Numbered from the whole stretch's first letter, positions 54,895 through 57,165 are shown. The stretch: 62,947 nt of DNA, filler included, from Guillardia theta CCMP2712 (GCF_000315625.1; 6 parts of 6 records of this genome joined end to end with filler, not necessarily neighbours in it), one strand, 5' to 3'. Numbers and translations are program-made. The notes: a model not told the origin generated them from the sequence alone.

Positions 54895-56922
54895 ACCAGC
54901 ACGACGATCTCGAGCTGCATGGCCTAGCACCTCCTTAGCATGCACCTCCCCATCGTTGTTGAACTTCTATCCGCGTCCTCGACCCTAGCTGTGACAGAGT
55001 CCTTGTCCTTCCCCTCCTCATCATGTTCAACTCCTCCGGAGGAGGAGGAGGAGGAGGAGGAGGAGGAGGAAAGAGGAAACAAGAGAGGAGGAAGAGGAGG
55101 AGGACGGAGGAGTTGAACATGAAGAGAAGGGGAAGTACAAGGATGGTTGCGTACAGCGGCAGCAGAGCACAAGGATCGAAGTCCAACCGCCTNNNNNNNN
55201 NNNNNNNNNNNNNNNNNNNNNNNNNNNNNNNNNNNNNNNNNNNNNNNNNNNNNNNNNNNNNNNNNNNNNNNNNNNNNNNNNNNNNNNNNNNNNNNNNNNN
55301 NNNNNNNNNNNNNNNNNNNNNNNNNNNNNNNNNNNNNNNNNNNNNNNNNNNNNNNNNNNNNNNNNNNNNNNNNNNNNNNNNNNNNNNNNNNNNNNNNNNN
55401 NNNNNNNNNNNNNNNNNNNNNNNNNNNNNNNNNNNNNNNNNNNNNNNNNNNNNNNNNNNNNNNNNNNNNNNNNNNNNNNNNNNNNNNNNNNNNNNNNNNN
55501 NNNNNNNNNNNNNNNNNNNNNNNNNNNNNNNNNNNNNNNNNNNNNNNNNNNNNNNNNNNNNNNNNNNNNNNNNNNNNNNNNNNNNNNNNNNNNNNNNNNN
55601 NNNNCGATCACTTGTAACGAGCTCGTTCTCTTTTGTTGACGCTGGAGTCCCAGAAATATCCAACGTGATACCTCGGCGAGCTTTATCCAACAAAGGAGGA
55701 GTGGTGACGATATACGGTCAGAATTTCTTGCCTGGACTAAGCCTCTGCGAGGTCGGCGGAGACAGCACTGCAGTCATGGGAGACTCCAGATCGATGGTGA
55801 CATGCAATCTTTCTCCACAGCCCCAGGGGAAGTATGAGCTATCAATATACACACGTGCAGTAGATGGCTTCTCAAACAAGATACTCATTTCATACGAAGC
55901 AGCCCCGACGGTTTCGTGGAGGAGGGGAGGGGAGGGGAGGAGAGGAGAGGAGGGGAGAGGAGAGGAGAGAGGAGAGGAGAGGAGAGGAGAGGAGAGGAGA
56001 GGAGAGGAGAGGAGAGGAGAGGAGCGTGGAGATACGAGAGGGGTGGAGAGTGAATCACAAGGTGGTTGACGGGAGTTTGGGAGGCGGGAGGGAGGATACA
56101 GAAATATCAGACCTCGTTGGTACATTTTTTGAAGTCTCCTTGTTTTCTGCACTTAGCAAGCAAGCTGAATTGAGAGATCAGTCGTTGAGATCGAAACTTT
56201 ACAGCAAAAAGTTCACCTCAACAATCTCCTCGTGAGATTCTCGTCAGCCAACGGCTGTCTCTTGAAATGCTGCGAGAAAGATCCAAGGAAAGCAAGGAGG
56301 TTTGAAGTCAGACAATGAAGCGAGGGAGATGGTGAAGATGACAATGTAAGGGGCATTGATTGAGTTCGAGAAAAGATGTAATGGGAGATGGGAGTGTTGT
56401 TTCACAACAACACCGCTGTTGTGTAATAACAACACTGTCGTGTAATAACAGCACTGTCGTGTTGGAACAACAACAGAGATCAAAGGTGAAAAAGAAGCCA
56501 TTGCGACAGGCAGGCAGGAATGTGCTGGTCAGAACAACAATCCCTTCCTCAACTACCTGAAACTCTTCCTCCTTCTCCGAGTTGGTGTAGCAAACTTCAT
56601 CATCATCAGCCTCGTCGTCTACGATGCTTTCCTTAATTCAACATGTCAGTCACACAACCAAACTACTCCCTCCTCCCCAACTCGCCTCCAGCTCCTTCGT
56701 TGCGAGTACCTTCTCCCCTCCGCTGTTGTCACTTGCCCCACACATGAGCTGGCTCGTTGGCTCCACCTTGCCGACTGATTCTTGCTGTTTCCTCCGCTTC
56801 TTTGACGGCTCCTTCAAACTCTCCACGTCGTGATCGTCCTCCTTCTCCACGATCCCTCCATCCCCCTCCCCCTTCTCTCCCTTGCCTTTCTCTCTCTTCT
56901 TCTCCTTCTTCTTCCTCTTTCT

Positions 56923-56967
<45 letters not shown>

Positions 56968-57165
56968 TACCCTCCCCTTTCCTTTGTTCTCCTTCCCTCC
57001 TCCACGCAGTCGCAGAGGTCCTGAGCAGGCGCTGACAAGGTTGAGCAGAGCGAGGCTGTCTTGGCTGCGACGCTGCATGGCATGGAGGGCACGAGAGTCT
57101 GACGAGGTCTGGAGGAGGAGGAGGAGGAGGACTGACAAGTAACGAGACGCAAGGGAGGCGGCCAT
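54895..57165 (-). CDS. Signal peptide + LRLRGG + K/E-rich NLS-like region + divergent L7Ae (Snu13/Nhp2-like) domain; 3' half interrupted by a gap
   Basis: Exons 57165-56686, 56631-56557, 56269-56217 and 56164-56113 join in frame to ...KELE|ESIVDD..EEEFQ|HFKRQPLADENLTRRLLS|LLAKCRKQGDFKKCTNE (Snu13: [31 protein letters not shown]). Beyond the gap, LDFDPCALLPL (~55185-55153) and VHAKEVLGHAA (~54945-54913) resemble ADAEPLEIILHL and VRSKQALGRAC. Confidence 0.7.
55605..55910 (+). CDS. IPT/TIG immunoglobulin-like domain exon (fragment)
   Basis: PEISNVIPRRALSNKGGVVTIYGQNFLPGLSLCEVGG...VTCNLSPQPQGKYELSI matches the IPT consensus PxIxxVxP..GG..VTIxGxNF. Confidence 0.75.

Follow-up and report, generated by a model that had tools for sequence, protein, structure and literature searches.

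A transcribed Guillardia theta gene with a signal-peptide-like leader and a possible, very divergent L7Ae-type domain

Does the nuclear genome of Guillardia theta CCMP2712 encode an RNA-binding protein of the L7Ae/Snu13/Nhp2 type that is delivered to the nucleomorph? The question is raised by a minus-strand gene at positions 54,895 to 57,165 of a 62,947-nucleotide stretch of DNA from this genome (GCF_000315625.1; six parts joined end to end with filler, not necessarily neighbours in the genome), which we call the window. The initial annotation of this locus described a signal peptide, a copy of the ubiquitin tail (LRLRGG), basic clusters that resemble nuclear localization signals (NLSs) and an L7Ae/Snu13 domain. 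We found that the locus is a nuclear gene that is transcribed, has six exons or more and belongs to a cryptophyte of the Guillardia/Hanusia clade. The explanation that we put first, and only tentatively, is that an L7Ae-like but divergent protein reaches the periplastidal compartment (PPC) and the nucleomorph by means of an ordinary leader, as is the case for nucleomorph H2A.

We aligned Logan contigs from three RNA runs (X1, X2, X3) to positions 53760-57550. A single contig of 724-728 nt, present in all three runs and with 0 mismatches, matched the genome at 56884..56685, 56630..56557, 56269..56217 and 56164..56110. This contig of approximately 726 nt backs a minus-strand exon chain of 57165..56686, 56631..56557, 56269..56217 and 56164..56110. 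The four in-frame exons proposed earlier do form one chain, because the contig joins exon 1 to the exon that opens with PLAD, and all of the strings quoted in the initial annotation are present on the minus strand. The open reading frame (ORF) opens at ATG 57165 with MAASLASRYLSVLLLLLLQTSS, and from there through exon 4 the coding sequence is 663 nt, or 221 codons, and free of stops. The leader and the LRLRGG region are transcribed as well, as small separate contigs span 56987-57168. When exons 3 and 4 are spliced they give the peptide PLADENLT...KKCTNE, on which the question of the domain turns. The parts of the gene that can be read in the window are these:

56686..57166, minus strand: first coding exon in the window, 160 codons, supported by the ORF and by contigs at 57168-56987 and 56884-56685.
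57100..57165, minus strand: signal-peptide-like leader, residues 1-22, with one Arg, the hydrophobic core LSVLLLLLLQT and then T-S-S.
56998..57099, minus strand: transit-peptide-like stretch, residues 23-56, isoelectric point (pI) 11.4, 5 K+R against 2 D+E, ending in LRLRGG.
56788..56985, minus strand: middle part of exon 1, of low complexity, with an (EQ)n run encoded by (GAGCAG)n and with basic clusters.
56632..56685, minus strand: intron 1, 54 nt, GC-AG (GCGAGT...TTAAG), with its joint at 56630/56685, at most 3 places of slack, in three runs.
56557..56631, minus strand: exon 2, 75 nt, 25 codons, acidic.
56217..56269, minus strand: exon 3, 53 nt, HFKRQPLADENLTRRLL and a split Ser codon.
56110..56164, minus strand: exon 4, 55 nt, LLAKCRKQGDFKKCTNEV, transcript-supported.

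Introns 2 and 3 are GT-AG introns of 287 nt and 52 nt, and the donor of intron 1 is GC; two of the three introns (1 and 3) are only 52-54 nt long. Intron 2 also holds three tandem 19-nt units at 56406-56462, each AACAACACCGCTGTTGTGT-like, with no Rfam match. The basic clusters of exon 1 are RKRKKKEKKR (residues 82-91, 56922..56893) and KKRRK (residues 122-126, 56802..56788). Nearly all of exon 1 consists of low-complexity DNA that is prone to slippage, and the whole piece of the window in which the gene lies (53% GC, intron-rich) is full of CT/GA microsatellites.

The taxon can be read from a neighbouring gene on the same strand. At 52817-53749 (minus strand) there is a BCNT/SWC5 (CFDP1-like) gene, a 310-codon ORF whose BCNT domain is recognized by Pfam with E 1.9e-5. 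This ORF had no match in a word-index protein search, and in an exhaustive protein search its best match, 88% identical along 124 residues, was EukProt EP00960, Hanusia phi. The GC content of the piece and its short introns suit Guillardia theta. This makes the organism a cryptophyte with a periplastidal compartment, the SELMA translocon and a nucleomorph, and the route that the earlier description invoked, from the endoplasmic reticulum (ER) to the PPC and on to the nucleomorph, does exist in it.

What would the protein be? Approximately 30 of the roughly 95 residues of an L7Ae domain would lie inside the window, in exons 3 and 4. We made our own profile from 105 L7Ae ORFs, out of 120 archaeal loci that had been chosen by the pattern KKGTNETTKA. 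The exon 3-4 peptide is the top match of this profile among 146 six-frame fragments, with 13.7 bits and E 3e-4, and it aligns to profile positions 12-38 (...alealekaretGkvkkGtne). With exon 4 by itself the score is 10.3 bits, and the best unrelated fragment reaches 4 bits. In terms of the L7Ae/Snu13/Nhp2 family (PF01248), PLA-x-x-x-L-x-x-x-LL...K-K-x-T-N-E-V aligns with archaeal helix 1 and the kkGtNE loop. The identity to canonical Snu13 is presumably only around 40% over 30 residues. The N-E of the loop is Snu13/L7Ae-like, where Nhp2 has K-E, but the 36 residues at hand are too few to tell a Snu13-like protein from an Nhp2-like one. From the alignment we believe that exons 3 and 4 probably encode helix 1 and, after it, the RNA-contact loop (K-x-x-N-E) of an L7Ae/Snu13/Nhp2-type domain that has diverged strongly, and we lean slightly towards an L7Ae-type fold for the protein.

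The remainder of such a domain falls where the assembly breaks off. Two further features are needed here:

55193..55604, no strand: assembly gap, which probably hides exons with 206 transcript letters (approximately 69 codons), the core of the domain.
54811..54961, minus strand: ORF beyond the gap, identical to the transcript only at 54943..54924 and after that alike at 24/30 positions with insertions and deletions.

Beyond exon 4 the transcript continues with 206 letters that are absent from the window, then a 20-nt match at 54943..54924, and then approximately 51 letters that are unlike the window; between 56110 and 54943 the match skips 1166 positions of the window. With 206+1 letters the HAKEVL of the 20-mer stays in the frame of exon 4, and the other two frames hold stops. 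If the unseen 206 letters are open, there are at least 92 in-frame codons after NEV, which is the size of an L7Ae domain. We could not see the core motifs (D-x-x-P ... LP-x-LC-E ... VPY ... SK-x-x-LG), which would lie in the gap. When we compared 30 loose transcript letters with the genome below 54924, 24/30 were alike, with insertions and deletions, for a score of 15 against a null of 2.6 +/- 1.5. With agreement of this kind, the continuity of the two sides of the gap is uncertain. The text beyond the gap is homologous to the expressed sequence, yet different from it; it represents either a duplicate that has diverged or the low-quality end of a contig. We had considered the ORF there as the 'SK..LG' segment of L7Ae, and set this aside because it is not the expressed sequence and reached just 2.2 bits on the L7Ae profile.

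Two other observations belong to the surroundings of the gap. To its left, 54811-55192 (minus strand) ends in a Gly/Arg-rich ORF tail, GGGGGGRGGGGGGGR, of which transcripts cover the 20-mer only. To its right, an IPT/TIG domain (PF01833) lies at 55650-55895 on the plus strand, with E 1e-8 and above the curated cut-off. It is on the strand opposite to the gene and stands between exon 4 and the gap, so it is inside intron 4 of the minus-strand gene; this stretch has no transcript contig and one raw read.

Where would the protein go? Counted from ATG 57165, the leader has the n-h-c layout of a signal peptide, with a maximum Kyte-Doolittle value of 2.35 in an 11-residue span. Around the ATG there is A at -3 and G at +4, and we consider it likely that 57165 is the start codon. 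The likely cleavage site is T-S-S, followed by D-S-R-A-L-H, and no aromatic residue is nearby (the site is assumed). In cryptophytes, PPC and nucleomorph proteins have a signal peptide and then a transit-peptide-like part without an aromatic residue at +1, and the nucleomorph H2A of G. theta, which has such a presequence, has been immunolocalised to the nucleomorph (PMC5443833). PPC presequences also have charged residues directly after the cleavage site, unlike stromal ones (PMC12136025). Given the assumed cleavage site, residues 23-56 have the properties described for the PPC class in these two papers (PMC5443833, PMC12136025). It is plausible from these features that the leader fits the published class of PPC presequences, if 57165 is the start codon. 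Should the protein start there, we think that a functional signal peptide is quite probable; and should the signal peptide function, the PPC or the nucleomorph is the destination that we would expect with good confidence. A phmmer comparison of the leader with the PDB gave no match.

In the explanation that we prefer, the leader would be an ordinary cryptophyte bipartite presequence, made up of a signal peptide together with a transit-peptide-like part that has no aromatic residue at +1. The protein would enter the ER and cross into the periplastidal compartment. The basic NLS-like clusters would then bring it into the nucleomorph, where it would bind RNA of the kink-turn type. LRLRGG would merely be part of the transit-peptide-like stretch, from duplication of a hexamer, and no deubiquitinase site.

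The start of the protein depends on what lies upstream of 57165. In two runs the match between contig and genome ends exactly at 57168, and one of the contigs has 33 letters more. Position 57168 falls in an acceptor, cag|A, 1 nt before ATG 57165, from which we infer that a 5' exon ending in AG, at a position that we could not locate, precedes the exon with the ATG. There are no AG|GT or AG|GC sites in 57169-57550, so the 5' exon is outside this piece. Its splice junction 1 nt ahead of the ATG leaves the true N-terminus uncertain. The signal-peptide leader of the initial annotation stands in part: the n-h-c layout and the basic stretch of pI 11.4 are there, and the N-terminus is not fixed.

We also tried the leader as the next HEAT helix of a Vps15 gene that lies upstream, as there is a GT...AG interval at 57385..57167 and the phase, GG|A-ATG, is compatible. 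We rejected this for three reasons. The match between transcript and genome reaches 57168, which makes the upstream exon end in AG, and the Vps15 exon ends in GG. Two small contigs account fully for the depth of the bin 57062-57188. When the peptides were joined, the alignment to PIK3R4 became longer by 6 residues only.

The Vps15/PIK3R4 homologue itself is represented by an exon at 57386-57462 (minus strand; PDB E 2e-5, human residues 585-608), and the candidate gene begins 220 nt downstream of it on the same strand. Its transcript contigs, of 2.4 kb and 4.6 kb, have hundreds to thousands of letters on each side of this exon, and none of these are in 53760-57385. This mismatch points to a small scaffold that is chimeric, or else to a partial duplication, with the junction possibly at a 12-nt tandem repeat at 57296-57385.

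A number of findings count against the explanation that we prefer, and the first of them concern the domain. With the exon 3-4 peptide as query, Pfam gave no family at E<=10; with exons 2-4, phmmer found no L7Ae, Snu13 or Nhp2 chain in the PDB at E<=10. The L7Ae/Snu13 domain of the initial annotation thus did not come through its most direct check, as the search of this peptide for PF01248 had no hit, and what would remain of the domain falls in the gap. The loop reads K-K-C-T-N-E, in which a Cys replaces the conserved Gly of K-G-x-N-E. The 13.7 bits beat chance within the piece, and are only suggestive once they are corrected for approximately 25,000 families; the family-wide expectation of such a match is about 0.05-0.2, for one family that was picked afterwards. 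A degenerate exon-4 pattern had 0 matches in metagenome contigs. Compared with known members of the family, the candidate also has an N-terminal extension of 190 residues. This extension has no relatives in word-index protein searches, which found no homologues of exon-1 residues 1-160, nor of residues 104-160 at E<=10, and Pfam on the exon-1 ORF gave only noise.

A quite different kind of protein would be one that is expressed, low in complexity and fast-evolving, with an unknown fold (secretory, ER or PPC), and whose PLAD...NE resembles L7Ae by chance. We regard this as possible, if doubtful. It agrees with the lack of L7Ae signal in Pfam and the PDB, with the lack of homologues in the word-index searches and with the mostly repeat-derived text of exon 1. 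In the PDB the best natural match of the peptide is NDUFB7, with E=1, which is equally weak. However, NDUFB7 as an identification (CHCH, with twin CX9C) is rejected, as the spacing in the peptide is T-x9-C and C-x8-C. A chance likeness also has to explain why the peptide outscores every other fragment of the piece so clearly on the L7Ae profile, with the RNA-contact loop in register, and why the length downstream suits an L7Ae domain.

The other findings on the negative side concern the leader. Its Leu run is a (CTC)6 microsatellite. Signal-peptide-like starts occurred in 4 of the 26 random ORFs (>=40 residues) of this CT-rich piece, by a criterion that is stricter than what the candidate itself reaches. 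An upstream start codon could sit in the missing 5' exon. In addition, a nucleomorph-encoded Snu13 is already present in all four sequenced cryptophyte nucleomorphs (PMC6461891).

Alternatively, the protein could belong to the nucleus or nucleolus of the host. It would be a ribonucleoprotein (RNP) component, a divergent L7Ae-family paralogue (Nhp2-, Snu13- or Rpp38-like) with a long K/E-rich extension that bears NLSs, and its hydrophobic start would be either internal, with the true start in the 5' exon, or an inert product of the microsatellite. Nucleolar proteins typically bear K/E-rich basic-acidic extensions with NLS-like clusters, and the candidate has an extension of this kind. The same L7Ae hint would serve here as well, and so would the 5' exon spliced 1 nt ahead of the ATG, the poly-Leu from (CTC)6 and the frequency of signal-peptide-like strings in the piece. 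However, ATG 57165 opens the frame in a strong initiation context, and a core that scores 2.35 at residues 10-20 would put a nuclear protein at risk of capture by the signal recognition particle. The basic stretch after the core, with few acidic residues, also resembles a transit peptide. We consider this alternative rather unlikely.

LRLRGG was the feature that gave the earlier description its particular mechanism, in which a ubiquitin mimic is cut after GG by a deubiquitinase-like protease of the SELMA pathway and the cut exposes the NLS. The six residues (51-56, 57015..56998) are identical to the last six of ubiquitin, and cryptophyte SELMA does have ubiquitin-handling factors (PMC6559170). 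Unlike in ubiquitin, no beta-grasp fold precedes the motif: the Pfam matches of the exon-1 ORF include no ubiquitin family, and only about 28 low-complexity residues separate the motif from the likely cleavage site of the signal peptide. The motif lies in a presequence-like, low-complexity stretch of short tandem repeats, and its codons, CTGCGA-CTGCGT-GGA-GGA, are a tandem hexamer and a GGA repeat. By six-frame composition, LRLRGG is expected by chance approximately 0.01 times in a piece of this size (about 6 kb), and strings of this kind are therefore common across a large scan. LRGG presequence motifs were said to be reported in such algae. Our full-text literature search for LRGG together with SELMA returned irrelevant papers only, and no paper in the library searched links the two. 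Most likely the motif arose by chance through slippage of repeats, when the hexamer was duplicated. The ubiquitin-tail idea is without support, and we consider clipping after GG by a deubiquitinase very improbable. The LRLRGG and leader strings are real, but in this repeat-rich context each of them is weak evidence individually.

Repeats also account for some other features of the piece. At 52100-52950 there are very long (ATG)n/(CAT)n, (GCA/GCT)n and (GAG)n runs, which give poly-Met, poly-His, poly-Ala and poly-Leu ORFs on both strands; these are microsatellites, not genes. At 54680-54875 a purine-rich arm stands opposite a pyrimidine-rich arm and collects many sub-threshold, microRNA-like Rfam matches. 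Rfam on the piece gave only sub-threshold matches, with the best at 38.6 bits against a gathering score of 88 (the hairpin at 54.7-54.87 kb), and we read the microRNA-like matches as a low-complexity artefact.

If the protein does carry a divergent L7Ae-type domain behind a functional presequence, it would most resemble nucleomorph H2A (PMC5443833). Like H2A, it has a host nuclear gene in a cryptophyte and would have a signal peptide with a transit-peptide-like part that lacks an aromatic residue at +1, and its cargo would bind nucleic acid, in the candidate by way of the putative domain. H2A differs in that it has been localised by antibody and its domain is unambiguous, while for the candidate targeting and domain are inferred and the start is not fixed. 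H2A is already known to take this route from host to nucleomorph, so the route is not new.

The family is of interest for another reason. Genes for Snu13, fibrillarin, Nop56, Nop58 and Cbf5 are present in each of the four cryptophyte nucleomorphs that have been sequenced (PMC6461891). Nhp2, Gar1 and Nop10 are absent from nucleomorphs and are encoded by the host "without obvious targeting peptides" (Asman et al. 2019, PMC6461891), and the same paper leaves open the pseudouridylation of nucleomorph rRNA and host control of nucleomorph RNA processing. Under the explanation that we prefer, the candidate would belong to the same protein superfamily and the same compartment as the nucleomorph Snu13 and the 'missing' Nhp2. 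A host-made L7Ae-family protein with a presequence could supply the nucleomorph with a subunit of a kink-turn or H/ACA-type RNP, for example the function of Nhp2, although at present we consider this specific role improbable. Such a gene may have been overlooked earlier because it is on a small scaffold that is broken by a gap. The locus is an ordinary one if it encodes a host nucleolar protein or one without an L7Ae domain. If our explanation is true, an L7Ae-type host gene with a presequence of the periplastidal class would be a concrete candidate where the nucleomorph lacks Nhp2, Gar1 and Nop10.

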